From sequence record OQ411014.1: DNA of 64,000 nucleotides; one strand, given 5' to 3'. The notes below the pieces were generated by a model. That model ran no database searches. It was not told the DNA's origin and saw only the letters and a program-made list of their open reading frames with translations. Positions 54,898 through 61,803 of this stretch are shown here, in pieces; position 1 is the stretch's first letter; every line of letters begins with the position of its first letter. Both the position numbers and the translations under genes were made by a program.

Positions 54898-54976
54898 TTG
54901 ACTTATTTTGTCAGTACTGGCATAATGTATTCATTGGCAGATAAGCCGTAGCCCATAGGGTGCGGAGATGTATCTA
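54898..54976 (+). ncRNA. Two-hairpin sRNA family, variant copy with promoter
   Basis: TTGACT-17-CATAAT; GGC-AGAUAA-GCC hairpin; GCCC-AUA-GGGUGC; converges on the next copy. Confidence 0.55.
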
Positions 54977-54994
54977 TAGAAAAAGTAGTTTAGT

Positions 54995-55077
54995 ATAGTT
55001 ACAGTTATGCACCCGGTGGGTTAGTGACTTTCTCGTCTTTATGTAGCTATTATGCCAGTACTGGATAGTGCTGTCAA
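54995..55077 (-). ncRNA. Two-hairpin sRNA family, copy with promoter
   Basis: TTGACA-17-CATAAT; GAC-GAGAAA-GUC hairpin; core at 55007-55020. Confidence 0.6.
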
Positions 55078-55156
55078 TACTTTTTTCTATTCAGTACTGA
55101 AAAAGTATTTGTAGAAAGTACTTGCATAGTACTGAATAAAGCGTATAATGTTTTAT

Positions 55157-55223
55157 ATCAGGACGGGGAAGAGATTCACTGTTAAGTAGTCTAGGTGTAA
55201 GACGTATGAAAAACACCCCTGAT
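55157..55223 (+). ncRNA. Pseudoknot sRNA family, copy B
   Basis: Own promoter 55122-55149; AUCAGG/CCUGAU closing stem; GGUG/CACC pairing. Confidence 0.65.
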
Positions 55224-55324
55224 AAAAGAATTAAAAAGTACTAGACAGTAAGAAATAAAAAGCGTATAATGTTTTACATCGAGTAGGGGGAATGGTTCTC
55301 CTACCTAAATTAAGGAATTACAAA

Positions 55325-55924
55325 ATGAATACTATCGTTAAATCTTTCGCAGACCTGGACGCAGAACAGAAGATCGCAGCGGTTGAAATGTATACAGACC
55401 GTGAAAAAGATAGCTCGGAAGATTTCTTTTCCGAAGGTGTAGTGGAATATTACCGTGAAACGGTACTACCTGAATACGGCATAGATGAAGCTGAATTGCA
55501 ATACAGTGGTTTTTGGTCGCAAGGTGACGGTGCATCAATCAGTACTGACAGCGTGGACGCGGAGAAGTTTTTACGCAAGATTAAAGCGTTAACGAAATAT
55601 CGTTCTATCCGTCACTTGTTGAATGAAGATGATTTGGCAATGAGTGTAGAACGTTCACACTCTCGCTACGCACACGAAAACACGGTAAGCGGATACATTG
55701 AAACGGCGTACACTGATTTAACTGTAAAACAAGCGGCACTTGCTGATGACCTGGAAAACGTACTGACCGAAACTATCCGCGAATTGTCTTGTGAACTGTA
55801 CCGTGAACTTGAGAAGGCTTATGATGATTATTACAGTACTGAAAGCATGGTTAATCAAATCGAGGGTAATGGTTACCAGTTTGAAGTAAACGAAGATGGC
55901 GACGTGGTAGGGATTGAATACTAA
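55325..55924 (+). CDS. Acidic early protein with YSGFWSQGDGAS motif
   Basis: True start MNTIVK; D/E-rich; motif recalled from phage and plasmid proteins of unclear function. Confidence 0.8.
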   Translation: MNTIVKSFADLDAEQKIAAVEMYTDREKDSSEDFFSEGVVEYYRETVLPEYGIDEAELQYSGFWSQGDGASISTDSVDAEKFLRKIKALTKYRSIRHLLNEDDLAMSVERSHSRYAHENTVSGYIETAYTDLTVKQAALADDLENVLTETIRELSCELYRELEKAYDDYYSTESMVNQIEGNGYQFEVNEDGDVVGIEY

Positions 55925-56017
55925 AAAAGTACTTGCATAGTACTGAATAAGGCGTATAATGTTTTATATCGAGAGCGGGAACACTTCCCGCCTCACATTA
56001 AGAGGAATTAAAAAAAA

Positions 56018-56251
56018 ATGAGTACTATCTTAACCGTTTCTCAATCTGTTGCCCTGGCTGACTTGTTGAACGCTTTAAGCCGTTGTACTGAGGTTGGCTT
56101 GTTTGATGTGGTTGACGTTGCCCCTGATGTTATCAATCATTTTTGTGATGCAATGGCTGAATGCCAGGAAGATGATCGCCGTATGATGGCGGTAAACTTT
56201 GCGGAAGTCCAGCCGGGAGAGTTAAAAGGTTTACCGGAAGTTAAAAATTAG
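56018..56251 (+). CDS. Early hypothetical protein
   Basis: Own promoter and GAGGA RBS. Confidence 0.8.
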   Translation: MSTILTVSQSVALADLLNALSRCTEVGLFDVVDVAPDVINHFCDAMAECQEDDRRMMAVNFAEVQPGELKGLPEVKN

Positions 56252-56335
56252 TTTGACAGTACTATCAAATAGTGTATAATGTTTTATATCGAGAGCGGGA
56301 ATGGTTCCCGCCTCCAATTAAGAGAGATTAATATC

Positions 56336-56575
56336 ATGGCAACTACTAAAACTTACAACGGTTACAAAAACAAAACTCATTGGAACGTTTCTTTGTGGAT
56401 CAATAACGATGAATCATTGTACCGCCTGGCGAAAGAGTTTATCGACGATAACGCTAATCGTGAAGATGCAGCCCGTCAGATGATGCTCTTTCTGGAACAA
56501 ACTGGACAAGATAAAACACCGGACGGCTTTAAGTATAGTACTACTGCGATCCGTGCGGCAATGGTTGGAATGTAA
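56336..56575 (+). CDS. Early protein, paralog of 53840-54064
   Basis: NGYKNKTHWNVSLWINNDESLY...RAAMVGM. Confidence 0.85.
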   Translation: MATTKTYNGYKNKTHWNVSLWINNDESLYRLAKEFIDDNANREDAARQMMLFLEQTGQDKTPDGFKYSTTAIRAAMVGM

Positions 56576-56664
56576 AAAAAAGAGTAGACAGTACTGAATA
56601 AAAGCGTATAATGTTTTATATCGAGAGCGGGAATGGTTCCCGCTACTAACCTGGAGTAATTGCA

Positions 56665-56850
56665 ATGCTGAATATTTTAATCGTTGATGAACATGGTAAA
56701 GAACTGGAATCATTTGAGTCTATGATCAATCCAATTGGTTCAAAGACTATCACTACTAATCTGGCTGTTTATGAATGTAATGAGTTTTCTGTTGACTTTA
56801 AACGCAATGAGATTGTAGTACACGTTCAAAATGATTTTATGAAATTTTAA
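56665..56850 (+). CDS. Early hypothetical protein
   Basis: Own promoter; GGAG RBS. Confidence 0.75.
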   Translation: MLNILIVDEHGKELESFESMINPIGSKTITTNLAVYECNEFSVDFKRNEIVVHVQNDFMKF

Positions 56851-56939
56851 AATAGTACTTGCATAGTACTGAATAAGGCGTATAATGTTTTATATCGAGA
56901 GCGGGAATGGTTCCCGCCTCACTATTAAGGAATACTACA

Positions 56940-57161
56940 ATGGCTAATATCACTACTCTTTCCCAACTTGAAGCACTGGTTAAATCTATGCGTGACCATG
57001 CCAATAGTATTGGTGTACAAGATCCGGCGGTATGTTTTTGTGACGAATTGAATGATGATACTTTAATCATTGCAGAAGTCCAGGACGTTTCCAACTATTC
57101 ATCGCGTTACACTGGCGACGTAGCAAATAAAGGTGACTTCTGTTTATACCTTACAAAATAA
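56940..57161 (+). CDS. Early hypothetical protein
   Basis: True start MANITT after AAGGA. Confidence 0.8.
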   Translation: MANITTLSQLEALVKSMRDHANSIGVQDPAVCFCDELNDDTLIIAEVQDVSNYSSRYTGDVANKGDFCLYLTK

Positions 57162-57211
57162 TAACAACGGGGATAATAACTCCCCGTTACTTTTTCAGTA
57201 CTGAATCATTT

Positions 57212-57295
57212 AATAGACGGATCTATGCACCCGGTGGGTTAGTGACTTTCTCGTCTTTATGTAGCTATTATGCCAGTACTGGATTGTATTGTCAA
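57212..57295 (-). ncRNA. Two-hairpin sRNA family, copy with promoter
   Basis: About 60 bp identical to the 55007 copy; TTGACA-17-CATAAT; core at 57225-57238. Confidence 0.6.
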
Positions 57296-57418
57296 GCATT
57301 TAAAGTACATTTATTTTAAAAAGAATATGAAGAAAGTACTATACACGGCTGAATAAAAGCGTATAATGTTTTGCATAGGGGGAAACAACTTCCCCCACTA
57401 ATTAAGAGAGAAATAAAA

Positions 57419-57625
57419 ATGGCTAAATGTACTATTTGTAATAAAGCAATTGTGCTAGTTCCTTCCGCTAGTGAACGTGCTAAACGTTATGGTGGCAAAG
57501 CGTCAGACTATACAAAAATGTTCACTACTCATACTGAATGTGCTATTAAAAAACGTTCAGAAGAAAGCACTGAATTAATGCGTCGAATTGTCGCGGAATC
57601 AAAAGCTAAAAAAGTACTTGCATAA
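57419..57625 (+). CDS. Early protein with possible Zn site (CxxC...HxxC)
   Basis: True start MAKCTIC; later HTEC. Confidence 0.75.
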   Translation: MAKCTICNKAIVLVPSASERAKRYGGKASDYTKMFTTHTECAIKKRSEESTELMRRIVAESKAKKVLA

Positions 57626-57693
57626 CTTATTCAGTACTGTACAATGTTTTTCAAAGGGGGAACAACTTCCCCCGCTAATTAAGGAATAAGAAA

Positions 57694-57930
57694 ATGGCTG
57701 AACAAATTAAATCAACGTCTTCGAATGTGACGGGTACTGTAGCTCACTTTATCGGTGATGAATCGCGTGGTGTTCCCTATTGTGCGGTGCATGTAAACAC
57801 TGAGGGTAACTACTGGTTTACAGTTTACGGATCATATTCATTTGGACGACCTGGACACCAAAAAATCCTGGATAAAGTACAACCAACGGGTAAAAATATC
57901 ACTGCTGAAATGTTTTATAAAAAATCATAA
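57694..57930 (+). CDS. Early hypothetical protein
   Basis: Own promoter; AAGGA RBS. Confidence 0.8.
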   Translation: MAEQIKSTSSNVTGTVAHFIGDESRGVPYCAVHVNTEGNYWFTVYGSYSFGRPGHQKILDKVQPTGKNITAEMFYKKS

Positions 57931-58018
57931 AAGTACTTGCATAACTTATTCAGTACTGTACAATGTTTTATATCGAGAGCGGGGAATACTTCCTCGCCTT
58001 AACTAAAAGGATATACTA

Positions 58019-58318
58019 ATGAAAATTGCACTAATCGCCCTGGCCTTGTCTGTTTCCTCTTTCGCCGCTACTGCATCGCGTGATGTACCAACTGAAAAAT
58101 TTATTCAGTGCCAGGTTATCATGACAGACGAAAACACGGGCGGCATGTTTACCAAACCGCTTGAATTAAATCCGGCGATGTTTAAGGCGGGGATGTTCCA
58201 CGAAGAAGACGAAAAAGGCAGTACTACAATCTATTACGACGAACAACGTAAACGCGGCACTGTTACGGTAATGGATGAATCATCAGTTACCTTTACGGGG
58301 ATCATTACCTGTAAGTAA
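58019..58318 (+). CDS. Early exported two-Cys protein
   Basis: Signal peptide MKIALIALALSVSSFA; IQC and C-terminal ITCK. Confidence 0.8.
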   Translation: MKIALIALALSVSSFAATASRDVPTEKFIQCQVIMTDENTGGMFTKPLELNPAMFKAGMFHEEDEKGSTTIYYDEQRKRGTVTVMDESSVTFTGIITCK

Positions 58319-58420
58319 TAAGGGGAATTATCATCATAACTTTCACTGGCGGTTAACAGTACTGAATCATAGGGGGAATAGTTCCCCCTTACTATATTAA
58401 ACATCAAAGGAGTAAAGGCA

Positions 58421-58690
58421 ATGGCTATCATCACGGCAAAGACTATCTATACTATTCAACATGGTAATCAGTCCTACCAGGTGGAAGGCGTGGAAGGTTT
58501 AAAACAGTACTGCGACGATATTATGGGCGGCCTGGTTGACCGTATGACGGCGGGGAATGTAGGCCATCATTTAACTGATAAGATGAATCAGCACGCTTTC
58601 TTGATGAAATCATTCGACGAGCTTGATCTAATCGTCGATACCGTTCGCAGTGTAAAACAGTATATTGATGATATAACCAAAGATGATTGA
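58421..58690 (+). CDS. Early hypothetical protein
   Basis: 89 aa; AAGGAG RBS. Confidence 0.8.
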   Translation: MAIITAKTIYTIQHGNQSYQVEGVEGLKQYCDDIMGGLVDRMTAGNVGHHLTDKMNQHAFLMKSFDELDLIVDTVRSVKQYIDDITKDD

Positions 58691-58872
58691 TAGTACTGTA
58701 AACGTGTATAAGCCTGTAGAATCAATTCTACGGGCTTTTTTGTTTTATATGATGTGTTAGCCTGGCTGGTGGCGTTAAGGCCGTTAGAATGCGATTGAGA
58801 GCGTCGAAAGTATTTTAAAAGTATTTTTAGAAAGTACTTGCACAGTACTGATAAAAGCGTATAATGTTTTAC

Positions 58873-58945
58873 ATCAGGACGGGGAAGCAAACTAGCTCAA
58901 CCGTTAAGTAGTCCAGGAGTAAGACATACGAAAACCTCCCCTGAT
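58873..58945 (+). ncRNA. Pseudoknot sRNA family, copy A
   Basis: Own promoter 58838-58865; AUCAGG/CCUGAU, ACGG/CCGU, GUAGUC/GAC-UAC and GGAG/CUCC pairings. Confidence 0.65.
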
Positions 58946-59024
58946 AAAGTACTAAAAAGTAGTTTGACAATAGAAAGTAAACGAGTATAATACTCACATC
59001 AACTTAACGAAAGGAATAAAAAAA

Positions 59025-59252
59025 ATGGCTATCATCATCACTCGCGTATCTGGTACAGTTGGCAATGCGGTAGTAGTAGCGGTTATCACTAACAAGAAAG
59101 GTGCGGAACTGCATTTTGCAATGAATAACTGGTCAGTGAATGAGTTCGGGCAGTTCGCTAGTGTAGAATACATTGAAACCTATCAAGTACCGACTATTAG
59201 CTTAACTGATTTAGGTGTCGAGCGTATCCTTTGCCTGGATGAATTAAACTGA
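59025..59252 (+). CDS. Early hypothetical protein
   Basis: Own promoter at 58964; AAGGA RBS. Confidence 0.8.
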   Translation: MAIIITRVSGTVGNAVVVAVITNKKGAELHFAMNNWSVNEFGQFASVEYIETYQVPTISLTDLGVERILCLDELN

Positions 59253-59339
59253 TAAAAAGTACTTGCACAGTACTGAAAAAAGCGTATAATGTTTTATATA
59301 GGGGGAAACAACTTCCCCCGCTAATTAAGGAATAAGAAA

Positions 59340-59552
59340 ATGGCTAATATCTGCACTGTACTGAAAAATGCAAAACAAGTTTTATTTTCTGACCATGAAA
59401 ATTTTAATAAAGATATTACAGGCGTTAAGAATATCAAAGATGTAAAAAGTGCAATAGGTATCTATTGCAATATGAAACGTGTTGGAACGTTCGGTGACAA
59501 GGTACTATATCAGGCAGGGGATTACAATTTTACACTGACTATCATTAACTAA
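59340..59552 (+). CDS. Early hypothetical protein
   Basis: Own promoter; AAGGA RBS. Confidence 0.8.
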   Translation: MANICTVLKNAKQVLFSDHENFNKDITGVKNIKDVKSAIGIYCNMKRVGTFGDKVLYQAGDYNFTLTIIN

Positions 59553-59638
59553 AAATATTATCACAGTACTATTGACATAATTTGATAGTACTGACATAAT
59601 AACTTTTATCAAGTACATACTATTAAGGAATTTAAAAA

Positions 59639-59818
59639 ATGGCTATCATCGCAAAAACTGAGATTCAAGGCTTAGATTCTATCCTCCTGGCTTATGAGTC
59701 CGAGAAAGGTTTATATGTTGTTTCCTATGGTGATTATATTCGTGACTTTGAAGAAATTGATCAAGCCTTTGAATGCTACATTCGCCAGGTGAATAAAGCA
59801 TACGACGATTACCGGTAA
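59639..59818 (+). CDS. Early acidic protein (59 aa; not in ORF track)
   Basis: MAIIAKTEIQG...; TTGACA-17-CATAAT promoter at 59572; AAGGA RBS. Confidence 0.75.
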   Translation: MAIIAKTEIQGLDSILLAYESEKGLYVVSYGDYIRDFEEIDQAFECYIRQVNKAYDDYR

Positions 59819-59901
59819 AATATTATCACAGTACTATTGACATAGTTTGATAGTACTGACATAATAACTTTTATCGAGTGCAACTATTAAGGAATACTAA
59901 A

Positions 59902-60153
59902 ATGCAATCTATCAGTACTTTAATCGATGCAGGTTATGATGTTCGTCGTTCCATGATCGCGGTTAGTTCTTCCCAGGTCGTTCAAAGTGGTTATGTATGT
60001 TTTGTTGTTCGTGGTACATTACAGGAGCGAGCAATAAACCACGATGTAAAGAATAATTGCTCTTACATTGTATTCCGAAAAGTCAAATATAAACTTGATG
60101 TTCCCGTAAAGCCTATTAGCGGGGCGTACAACGTAGAATCATTAAAAGCGTAA
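59902..60153 (+). CDS. Early hypothetical protein
   Basis: True start MQSIST; promoter at 59837. Confidence 0.75.
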   Translation: MQSISTLIDAGYDVRRSMIAVSSSQVVQSGYVCFVVRGTLQERAINHDVKNNCSYIVFRKVKYKLDVPVKPISGAYNVESLKA

Positions 60154-60221
60154 CAGCATAGCAGTACTGACCATTAACGCCGTAGCGGTCGATTTAGGCC
60201 GCTTATATTGAGGATTTAACT

Positions 60222-60611
60222 ATGAATACTAATCAAGTACTGAACGAAATCGAAAGCATCATTAAGCCGATGAAACGTGTTGATGCAATGCTAACACCGG
60301 AAGAAAGTCGCTTGTATGAGCGATACAGCGTCGAACAAGCCCAGGCGATGGCACGTATTCGCCCCGTTGCCAGTACTGACAAGGAAGATCCAACGTTAGC
60401 CATCCAAAAGAAGATCGACATCTTAGCGGCGAATATGTATATGATTGATGCGTCGCCAGGTAAAGTATTTGCGTATGATGATACAACTGAAAGCGATTTC
60501 TACTATAGCCTGGACGTGGGGGATCTTCCTATCGAGTCAGTGATTGAACATGTTGTAACTGTTGCTTATGATCATTTAGTTAAAAACAATGTTGACAGTA
60601 CTATCAAATAG
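60222..60611 (+). CDS. Early hypothetical protein
   Basis: 129 aa; GAGGA RBS. Confidence 0.8.
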   Translation: MNTNQVLNEIESIIKPMKRVDAMLTPEESRLYERYSVEQAQAMARIRPVASTDKEDPTLAIQKKIDILAANMYMIDASPGKVFAYDDTTESDFYYSLDVGDLPIESVIEHVVTVAYDHLVKNNVDSTIK

Positions 60612-60674
60612 CGTATAATGTTTTACATCGAGAGCGGGAATACTTCCCGCCTCACTAATTAAGGAATTAAAATT

Positions 60675-60908
60675 ATGATGCACATCCTTACTCTTACTCT
60701 GAATCACAAAACTTATGAAACTATCCTCGTCATCTCTGAGTCGCAGGAAAAGGTACGTGATCACGCGGCGAAAGTAATGCAGGCATTCAGTGAACGTTAT
60801 CCTACATGGGATCGTGATTATAGTATGTTACACATTGCCGATGGCAACGCGATAATGGTCCAGGACGTGCCAAATCACGGGGCTGAATCAGTACTAGTTT
60901 TATTTTAA
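60675..60908 (+). CDS. Early hypothetical protein
   Basis: Own promoter; AAGGA RBS. Confidence 0.8.
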   Translation: MMHILTLTLNHKTYETILVISESQEKVRDHAAKVMQAFSERYPTWDRDYSMLHIADGNAIMVQDVPNHGAESVLVLF

Positions 60909-60996
60909 AATAGTACTTGCATAGTACTGAAAAAAGCGTATAATGTTTTATATCGAGAGCGGGAATAGTTCCCGCCTTAACTAAAAGGGTAACATC

Positions 60997-61209
60997 ATGC
61001 AAGGTCAACTAATCGTTCGTAAATGGTCTGATACTAACGCTAAACCGTGGGATGTACAATACATCGCCCCAAATGGTGAATCCAGATATCAACCAGGTGT
61101 AACGCATAGTACTGAGCAATTCGCCGCCGCTCATCGCGAACGTCTGTTACAATCAATTCAGCAAGGTTCCGGTGAAAAATTCATTCAGGATCATTGGCTG
61201 AAAGATTAA
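60997..61209 (+). CDS. Early hypothetical protein
   Basis: Own promoter and RBS. Confidence 0.75.
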   Translation: MQGQLIVRKWSDTNAKPWDVQYIAPNGESRYQPGVTHSTEQFAAAHRERLLQSIQQGSGEKFIQDHWLKD

Positions 61210-61221
61210 CAAAAAAAGATT

Positions 61222-61313
61222 AAAAAAGGGATTGACTCCGGTCAGTCCTTTTTGCTATTATATACGCATCGAAACAATCTAGCCCACCGGGTGCATAAAT
61301 GTATCTTTTTTTT
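61222..61313 (+). ncRNA. Two-hairpin sRNA family, copy driven by a fused terminator/promoter
   Basis: TTGACT-18-TATTAT; core CCCACCGGGTGCAT at 61283-61296; ends in T8. Confidence 0.6.
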
Positions 61314-61386
61314 GCTGGTGGCTAGTACTGAAAACTATTTTTAAAAAGTACTTGCATTGTACTTAGAATAAAGTATAATGTTTTAC

Positions 61387-61459
61387 ATCAGGACGGGGAA
61401 CGAAACAAGTAACCCCGTTAAGTAGTCCAGGAGTAAGACATACGAAAACCTCCCCTGAT
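61387..61459 (+). ncRNA. Pseudoknot sRNA family, copy C
   Basis: Own promoter 61352-61379; ACGGGG/CCCCGU stem; 3' part identical to copy A. Confidence 0.65.
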
Positions 61460-61527
61460 AAAATAGTTTGACAATAGAAATTAAACGAGTATAATACTTA
61501 CATCAACTACTGTTAAGGAAACATAAA

Positions 61528-61803
61528 ATGCGGATTCTACTGACAGCTAACGAAATCGAACAAGTACTGACTACTAACCTGGAAGACTGGAAACGTGAAG
61601 CAGATATCCAGGCGGTTCAATTGCTTAACGATAAGTTAACGCCGGATGACTTAAGCAAAATTGTAGATCCTCAATTCTACGAAGATATCCACGACACCGC
61701 GTTAAGCGTCGAGGATGTACTTGATAAGCATTTTATTGATATTGATTTGCAGGTTTACGGTCGTAAAAACTTTATCACTATCCACGACATTTACAATAAT
61801 TAA
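61528..61803 (+). CDS. Early acidic protein
   Basis: Own promoter at 61468; AAGGA RBS. Confidence 0.8.
   Translation: MRILLTANEIEQVLTTNLEDWKREADIQAVQLLNDKLTPDDLSKIVDPQFYEDIHDTALSVEDVLDKHFIDIDLQVYGRKNFITIHDIYNN

Follow-up and report, generated by a model that had tools for sequence, protein, structure and literature searches.

A covarying pseudoknot RNA at the predicted start of early transcripts in jumbo, rV5-like and T7-like phages of Enterobacterales

Introduction

Structured leaders close to the promoters of phage early operons are known as a general kind of RNA. The gene 32 leader of phage T4 carries an H-type pseudoknot at its 5′ end and an A/U-rich unstructured stretch before the ribosome site, and the PeSL cassettes of T4-type phages, which consist of an early promoter and a simple stem-loop between variable small early genes, are thought to be recombinational. 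In phage HK022, the put RNAs of ~70 nucleotides (nt), present in two copies per genome with putL starting from +3 of an early promoter, contain a minor-groove triplex and act on the very polymerase that made them (PMC9378689). Here we describe a pseudoknotted RNA element, three copies of which lie on the + strand of a 64,000-nt stretch of sequence record OQ411014.1 (hereafter the window), at 55157-55223, 58873-58945 and 61387-61459. Its fold and sequence, of which no description was found in the searchable literature, define a new RNA family.

Like the PeSL cassettes, the element occurs in repeated promoter-plus-structure cassettes common to several phages, but it differs from them in its conserved covarying pseudoknot core. 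Like put, it is a nascent RNA of ~70 nt near the predicted start of host-polymerase early transcripts, occurs in a few copies per genome, has no protein partner encoded nearby and contains an A-rich or triplex-type strand (PMC9378689); put, in contrast, belongs to temperate lambdoid phages and has no sequence likeness to it. A 5′ pseudoknot is also present at the standby site of Escherichia coli tisB (PMC7708055), a host toxin mRNA and a single gene, whereas the present element heads many different genes and usually another promoter.

A conserved pseudoknot fold

The original prediction, made from the letters of the window, had proposed three copies of a ~70-nt early RNA with an H-type pseudoknot, and their coordinates and core were confirmed. 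A 23-nt core pattern matched three times in the window vs 0.00 matches expected, and an unfiltered scan of all 64 kb with the covariance model R2, which was built from 33 sequences, scored exactly these three copies at 50-55 bits and nothing else above 12 bits. Each copy is, with high confidence, an RNA domain of 67-73 nt at the extreme 5′ end of an early transcript of the host sigma-70 polymerase, the promoters here and below being predicted or taken from record annotation. The domain very probably has four helical parts, namely a closing helix P1 that includes nucleotide +1, an optional variable hairpin P2, a hairpin P3, and a pseudoknot helix of 4-5 base pairs in which the P3 loop pairs with the nucleotides immediately preceding the 3′ strand of P1; there is similarly little doubt that this H-type pseudoknot is stacked on P1 and bridged by the invariant A-rich strand ACGAAAA. 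In the window, P1 is AUCAGG/CCUGAU, P2 is ACGG(GG)/(CC)CCGU, and the pseudoknot helix is GGAG/CUCC in two copies vs GGUG/CACC in the third. Minimum-energy folding selected P1, P2 and the GGAG/CUCC helix, and the combinations P1+P2+P3 (-17.4 kcal/mol) and P1+P2+pseudoknot (-17.8 kcal/mol) are nearly isoenergetic and topologically compatible. The family core reads UAAGUAG-N-C, a loop, UAAG-N-C, two variable nt, AC and GAAA, and ~25 positions are invariant (UAA before P3, GUAG-N-C, UAAG-N-C, and AC then GAAA); copy 55157 has a U instead of the usual C before GAAA.

Next, the proposed pairing was compared among relatives, as the original prediction had advised, and a wider covarying family was found. 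In 16 distinct sequences from close relatives (alignment A2), the proposed helices were 96.7% paired, and only two pairs were compensated, a U-A to C-G change in P3 and an A-U to U-A change in the pseudoknot; covariation among the close copies alone is thus suggestive, not strong, and the case rests on the wider family. Among 32 distinct cores (alignment A3), the pseudoknot helix was paired in every one, with three of its four pairs compensated: the first occurs as CG or GC, the second as CG, GC or UA, and the third as UA or AU, with one U-G. The compensated versions comprise GGAG/CUCC, GGUG/CACC, CCAG/CUGG, CCUG/CAGG and CUUG/CAAG, so that the GGAG/CUCC to GGUG/CACC change seen in the window is one of several, and the loop pairing on which the original prediction depended is kept in all 32 cores. 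The P3 pair 10-23 likewise occurs in three types (AU, CG and UA) in these cores. Altogether, 95.3% of the A3 cells were paired vs 18-33% with the partner strand slid, and 0 of 500 shuffles reached the observed value. P1, P2, P3 and the loop pairing were borne out as originally drawn, except for the innermost pair of the lower P3 half (A-U, next to the bulge), which is unpaired in 13 of the 32 cores. Supportively, in 15 T7-like sequences (alignment A4), P1 covaries at five of its six pairs, taking forms such as GUCAA/UUGAC, GAUUAG/CUAAUC, GUCGGU/ACCGAC and GUCAUC/GAUGAC; eight pairs were changed on both sides vs 1.6 in shuffles, and 0 of 500 shuffles reached the observation on any measure, including two that are robust to relatedness. 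These results demonstrated that the conserved RNA fold is real.

Three other readings of the same segments were rejected. The G-U pairs lie on the sense (+) strand and would turn into C-A mismatches in a minus-strand RNA; an open reading frame (ORF) is found in copy 55157 alone; and a terminator would be without a U run.

Promoters, terminators and genes around the three copies

In all three copies the element begins 8 nt after the end of a TATAAT, which is preceded by a 16-nt spacer, TTGCAY and A/T-rich sequence; the earlier claim that each copy follows an early promoter therefore holds. By comparison with the A1 promoter annotated in phage 13a, this 8-nt distance puts the 5′ base of P1 at +1, and transcription from these promoters is what we infer. 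A second promoter with 11-12 of 12 consensus matches follows each copy on its 3′ side, again as claimed. The whole forms a repeated module of ~190 bp, composed of an A/T-rich stretch, promoter, element and second promoter, with 85% column identity in an alignment of the three copies, which are single, 3.7 and 2.5 kb apart, and free of tandem repeats. The features are as follows.

55122-55149, + strand: promoter of copy 1; TTGCAT 55122-55127, 16-nt spacer, TATAAT 55144-55149; A/T-rich upstream, with AGTACT palindromes
55157-55223, + strand: copy 1, 50.2 bits; P1 55157-55162/55218-55223
55163-55166/55179-55182, + strand: P2 of copy 1, plus an apical GAGA-looped stem
55186-55191/55201-55207, + strand: P3 of copy 1
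55194-55198 (GGUGU)/55213-55217 (ACACC), + strand: pseudoknot of copy 1
55206-55244, + strand: 12-codon ORF running beyond copy 1, ATG behind AGGUG
55242-55270, + strand: second promoter after copy 1; TAGACA, 17-nt spacer, TATAAT
55325-55924, + strand: gene after copy 1; 199 amino acids (aa), phrog_5162, no known function
58710-58737, + strand: terminator-like hairpin with T run, closing the preceding unit just upstream of the copy 2 module
58838-58865, + strand: promoter of copy 2; TTGCAC, 16-nt spacer, TATAAT
58873-58945, + strand: copy 2, 54.8 bits; P1 58873-58878/58940-58945
58879-58882/58901-58904, + strand: P2 of copy 2, variable top
58908-58913/58923-58929, + strand: P3 of copy 2
58916-58919 (GGAG)/58936-58939 (CUCC), + strand: pseudoknot of copy 2
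58964-58991, + strand: second promoter after copy 2; TTGACA, 16-nt spacer, TATAAT, 12/12
59025-59252, + strand: gene after copy 2; 75 aa, phrog_13850, no known function
61224-61253, + strand: terminator-like hairpin closing the copy 2 unit, right before the copy 3 module
61352-61379, + strand: promoter of copy 3; TTGCAT, 16-nt spacer, TATAAT
61387-61459, + strand: copy 3, 54.8 bits; P1 61387-61392/61454-61459
61393-61398/61413-61418, + strand: P2 of copy 3
61422-61427/61437-61443, + strand: P3 of copy 3
61430-61433 (GGAG)/61450-61453 (CUCC), + strand: pseudoknot of copy 3
61468-61495, + strand: second promoter after copy 3; 12/12
61528-61803, + strand: gene after copy 3; 91 aa, phrog_14947, no known function

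No terminator or U run was found 3′ of any of the three copies, so a discrete 70-nt RNA is not defined by the sequence alone, and transcripts should, as far as the sequence indicates, run on through the second promoter into the gene. The "unannotated phage sRNA" of the original prediction accordingly stands as an unannotated structured phage RNA, and not as a delimited ~70-nt molecule. Its statement that the copies contain no ORF was right for copies 2 and 3; the 12-codon ORF of copy 1 is probably accidental, since no other copy has one. The genes that follow the copies are mutually unrelated, and their proteins gave no informative Pfam or PHROG function. A relative of the phrog_13850 gene also comes after the element in the Vequintavirinae phage A73, and the phrog_14947 gene also adjoins it in Justusliebigvirus muut.

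Over positions 54900-61700, the window shares 99.6% identity with Escherichia phage EJP2 and 80-87% with further Asteriusvirus jumbo phages (PBECO4, 121Q and G17), and thus belongs to an Asteriusvirus jumbo phage. In relatives with written-out ends (G17, locus L012; annotation of vB_Ec-M-J), the homologous region lies inside a ~22-kb direct terminal repeat, in which small genes are arrayed among numerous promoters of the sigma-70 type and predicted terminators. A scan of the window for tRNA and tmRNA genes found none.

Some further observations concern these promoters. An imperfect 23-nt inverted repeat (78% complementary) at 55088-55138 brackets the -35 region of the copy 1 promoter and could be an operator. 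The second promoters at 58964-58991 and 61468-61495 resemble the A2/A3 promoters of T7-like phages even in the spacer (TTGACAA...GAAGTAA/GAAAGTAAAC; T7-like loci compared: L083 ~586-620 and L048 ~694-730), and whole promoter cassettes seem, by this sequence comparison, to be common to several phage families. Transcripts of early promoters that lack the element begin with CAUCGAG and then a G-rich 5′ hairpin (window 55276-55308; L016 15723-15750), and the CAUCGAG start is the same as that of the T7-like A1 leader (CAUCGAGAGGG).

Distribution of the family

BLAST searches with the long form of the element retrieved 45 phage records, with two copies per Asteriusvirus genome (four if both terminal repeats are written out), three in EJP2, and one each in ~145-kb Justusliebigvirus and Vequintavirinae phages. 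The variant of copy 55157 (GGUG/CACC) occurs among these relatives only in EJP2, and copy 3 is identical in 121Q and four other phages. With a covariance model based on A2, each of the other Asteriusvirus loci gave a weak match at a third, syntenic site. These matches are a short form without P2, with GAC/GUC at the top of P3, a CCAG/CUGG pseudoknot and a GACG/CGUC closing helix, and they lie directly 3′ of a promoter in the 5′ untranslated region (UTR) of a 160-aa gene. EJP2 has a fourth copy of the short form just beyond the window end (record 1952-2019; L050 401-468), with P1 AUCAA/UUGAU and pseudoknot CCUG/CAGG. With the short form added, the other Asteriusvirus genomes have three copies and EJP2 four, within a family range of 1-4 per genome.

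BLAST searches with the short form matched Erwinia phage Hallingskeid, the Vequintavirinae phage LTH01, Salmonella jumbo phages (Munch, 7t3 and others) and T7-like phages, and the core is shared by rV5-like phages and by the Munch-like jumbo phages of Salmonella and Erwinia. Its position in phage 13a is 593-628, between the annotated promoters A1 (504-540) and A2 (631-668). A 47-nt query of the T7 type retrieved 508 records, including T7 itself (544-590), phiYeO3-12, Kayfunavirus and many phages of Klebsiella, Yersinia, Salmonella, Serratia and Enterobacter; T3 carries the element too, which occupies the A1-A2 interval in T7, T3 and other Studiervirinae. The A1-A3 promoter region of the textbook phages T7 and T3 is a standard transcription tool, and a covarying pseudoknot sits between A1 and A2. 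Early operons of unrelated jumbo and rV5-like phages begin with the same core, which points to a conserved RNA function in host takeover.

The element always lies within ~100 nt of an early transcript start of the host polymerase. In the window, as in jumbo and rV5-like phages, P1 begins at +1, and in T7-like phages it begins ~40 nt into the A1 leader, and a second strong promoter usually follows 0-30 nt on the 3′ side. All its hosts are virulent phages of Enterobacterales. No match was found in E. coli genomes and plasmids, and of 17 pattern hits in 185,579 bacterial species genomes only one, on a short phage-like contig, was real. First pattern scans of IMG/VR and metagenomes returned only phage 121Q and two contigs, and a later IMG/VR pattern scan added 30 further loci, one of them on a 39,937-bp contig that matches T7 records at the element site. 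A loose 15-base pattern gave 31 loci, almost all of which were chance matches according to the model searches and were set aside.

Whether the conserved unit is an RNA at all can be judged from these data. It is very improbable that it acts solely at the DNA level, serving the second promoter as an upstream activating region or a factor site, or being no more than a repeated recombination cassette, even though it nearly always stands just upstream of another promoter, its P1 3′ strand is the -35 hexamer of A2 in T7-like phages, and the whole ~190-bp module is repeated and common to several phage families. Interleaved compensatory changes in three helices, including the pseudoknot, keep the pairing; G-U pairs occur in the sense orientation only; and the short form has no functional-looking second promoter.

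Two further sets of observations were made at these loci. A 12-mer, GCTCTTTAACAA, occurs downstream of the pseudoknot in T7-like leaders (L083 813-824, L048 794-805, L049 836-847, L070 4167-4178 and 14 other loci; in contig L070, 10 nt separate it from the element), and we take it to be a boxA of the rRNA-operon type, a signal that modifies the host polymerase. In addition, hypothetical proteins are annotated across the element in several GenBank records, some on the opposite strand (L017 13034-13126, - strand; L004 2203-2601, - strand; further records BAU.Micro_ELP-22, JP4 and WPEC3). These are probably spurious calls, which the family model would serve to correct, and the same model marks immediate-early transcription units in new phage genomes.

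Comparison with known RNA families

No match to Rfam 15 was found at the gathering score in the whole window, in agreement with the element being unannotated. With relaxed thresholds, only chance hits were obtained, at E up to 10 for two window copies and at E up to 5 for the T7-like, short-form and jumbo-phage variants, and there was no match among the Rfam models of antitoxins, of pseudoknot riboswitches (preQ1, SAM-II/V, guanidine-III, fluoride, NAD-II and others) or of self-cleaving ribozymes (hammerhead, twister, pistol, hatchet and HDV-like).

These comparisons bear on several proposals. The original prediction had suggested a mimic of the type III antitoxin ToxI, likewise a small RNA of phages or plasmids that has a pseudoknot and A-rich flanks. 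ToxI, however, forms tandem repeats of ~36 nt beside a toxin gene, whereas the present copies are single, with no tandem units of ~34-36 nt, no toxin gene and no match to a ToxI-type Rfam model, and the suggestion was dropped. A small-molecule or ion aptamer, that is, a riboswitch-like sensor without a classical platform, would fit the size, the H-type pseudoknot with its A-rich strand and the dense invariant core, which resemble those of small pseudoknot aptamers. We consider it quite improbable, because no riboswitch model matched even at the most permissive threshold, a promoter rather than a terminator or a sequestered ribosome site lies downstream, the downstream genes are varied with none linked to a ligand, and the element is absent from bacterial genomes.

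Many small ribozymes are phage-associated. A new class of self-cleaving ribozyme, whose cut would define an RNA end within the leader, would accord with this and with a conserved pseudoknotted core of ribozyme-like size, and self-cleavage would account for the missing terminator; we give it a similarly low likelihood. No ribozyme model matched, and we know of no report of cleavage from the decades in which T7 A1 transcripts have been studied in vitro, a weak argument given that many of the templates were truncated. The T4 gene 32 leader is best approached by the short form. It differs from the present family in that the proteins downstream of the element are varied and have no single-stranded-DNA-binding domain, there is no sequence likeness, and the T7-like element is far from any start codon.

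Possible modes of action

The reading that we put first, tentatively and by analogy with HK022 put, is that the nascent RNA acts in cis on the host elongation complex. The pseudoknot would fold on leaving the polymerase, and the folded RNA would bind the same elongating host polymerase or its elongation partners; this binding may alter pausing or termination over the untranslated, terminator-studded early region, as put does, which suppresses both from the zinc-binding domain of the polymerase, and polymerases from the second promoter would be without this mark. Cis action is ranked first because put is the closest working precedent. It is consistent with P1 at +1 or ~40 nt into the transcript, with 1-4 copies per genome, with unrelated downstream genes, with the lack of an expression platform or terminator and with the boxA-like 12-mer that T7-like leaders carry besides the element, and one RNA per polymerase would be enough, whereas titrating an abundant protein would take far more RNA.

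Several observations weigh against cis action on the polymerase. The element-headed units end at predicted terminators, and behind the short form there is just one gene and then a terminator, which would be odd if the polymerase ignored terminators. T7-like phages carry the element on A1 transcripts only, and the near-constant second promoter just 3′ of it is not accounted for. The HK022 put RNA consists of two hairpins in a V shape without a pseudoknot, and the fold made of P1, optional P2, P3 and the pseudoknot therefore excludes the present RNA from the put family, whatever its mode of action. No boxA-like 12-mer is found in the window, so a partnership with boxA is not general. Finally, the contact with polymerase is itself only a proposal drawn from put.

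RNase III cuts the T7 leader off the first mRNA at a site before gene 0.3. This cut bears in opposite ways on two other readings. In the first, which we consider rather unlikely, the domain would be cut or trimmed from the leader and act in trans as a decoy. Starting in the first minute of infection, it would bind a host protein of low abundance, for example a ribonuclease or the sensor or effector of a defence system. The separate T7 leader left by RNase III would be such an RNA, and a decoy would also agree with the very strong early promoters, with an independent cassette between a terminator and the next gene's own promoter, with near-identical copies before different genes in three phage groups, with several copies in jumbo phages and with ~25 invariant nt that are unpaired or in junctions. 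However, no terminator or conserved processing site sets the 3′ end, no known protein-binding RNA in Rfam is similar, and near-universal presence in T7-like phages (508 records) suggests a core rather than an accessory function. The CsrB-type sponge that was originally put forward did not survive the comparison: CAGGA motifs are present in the window copies and are not conserved in the wider family. A CsrA sponge would need many conserved GGA in hairpin loops. Each copy has only two GGA, and the one in the loop is replaced without loss of pairing, by GGU in copy 55157 and by CCUG, CCAG or CUUG in relatives, with no T7-type or short form retaining it, so that a CsrA-type GGA is not conserved.

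In the second reading, the pseudoknot would bury the 5′ end as a cap or barrier that blocks RNase E attack or scanning and stabilises the early polycistronic mRNA. This is improbable, although P1 includes +1 in the window and in most lineages other than T7, transcripts of the neighbouring second promoters also begin with simple 5′ hairpins, and the short form lies in a true 5′ UTR ~55 nt before the start codon. In T7-like phages, ~40 nt precede P1 and the leader is removed by RNase III, which would leave the mRNA unprotected and disfavours a pure mRNA-stabiliser role; moreover, a simple hairpin would suffice, and the 25 invariant nt would not be accounted for.

Beyond the specific mechanism, the occurrence of one family in T7-like, rV5-like and several jumbo phages favours a general role in the early transcripts of the host polymerase over an accessory counter-defence gadget. 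The original prediction had placed the copies in an RNA-decoy arsenal in the first-injected DNA; the terminal-repeat location in relatives would fit an early, possibly first-entering region, and it is the counter-defence part that this breadth speaks against. We see as evenly balanced the broader proposition that the element represents a class of host-directed regulatory RNAs, common to T7, T3 and hundreds of virulent enterobacterial phages, that reprograms or hides from a core host machine (polymerase, RNase or immune sensor) in the first seconds. If it is true, even the best-studied phage early region still holds an unrecognised functional RNA. For work on structure and binding, the family supplies a defined 45-75-nt RNA that is directly testable in T7 and T3.

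Other repeated motifs in the window

The palindrome AGTACT occurs 294 times over window positions 1-64000 vs ~24 expected, a ~12-fold excess. Examples in and around early promoters are at 54913-54918, 55093-55098, 55118-55123 and 55129-55134 (context AAAGTACTTGCA), and the palindrome is often part of the longer form CAGTACTG. A site for a factor, or a motif associated with promoters, may explain it. Upstream of the promoters that drive the element, a GC-rich motif, AGCCCA-N-GGGTGC, is repeated together with its reverse complement (54940-55025 and 61281-61300). It was found too in the metagenome contigs L008 and L009, and may correspond to the two-hairpin family that the original prediction had mentioned.

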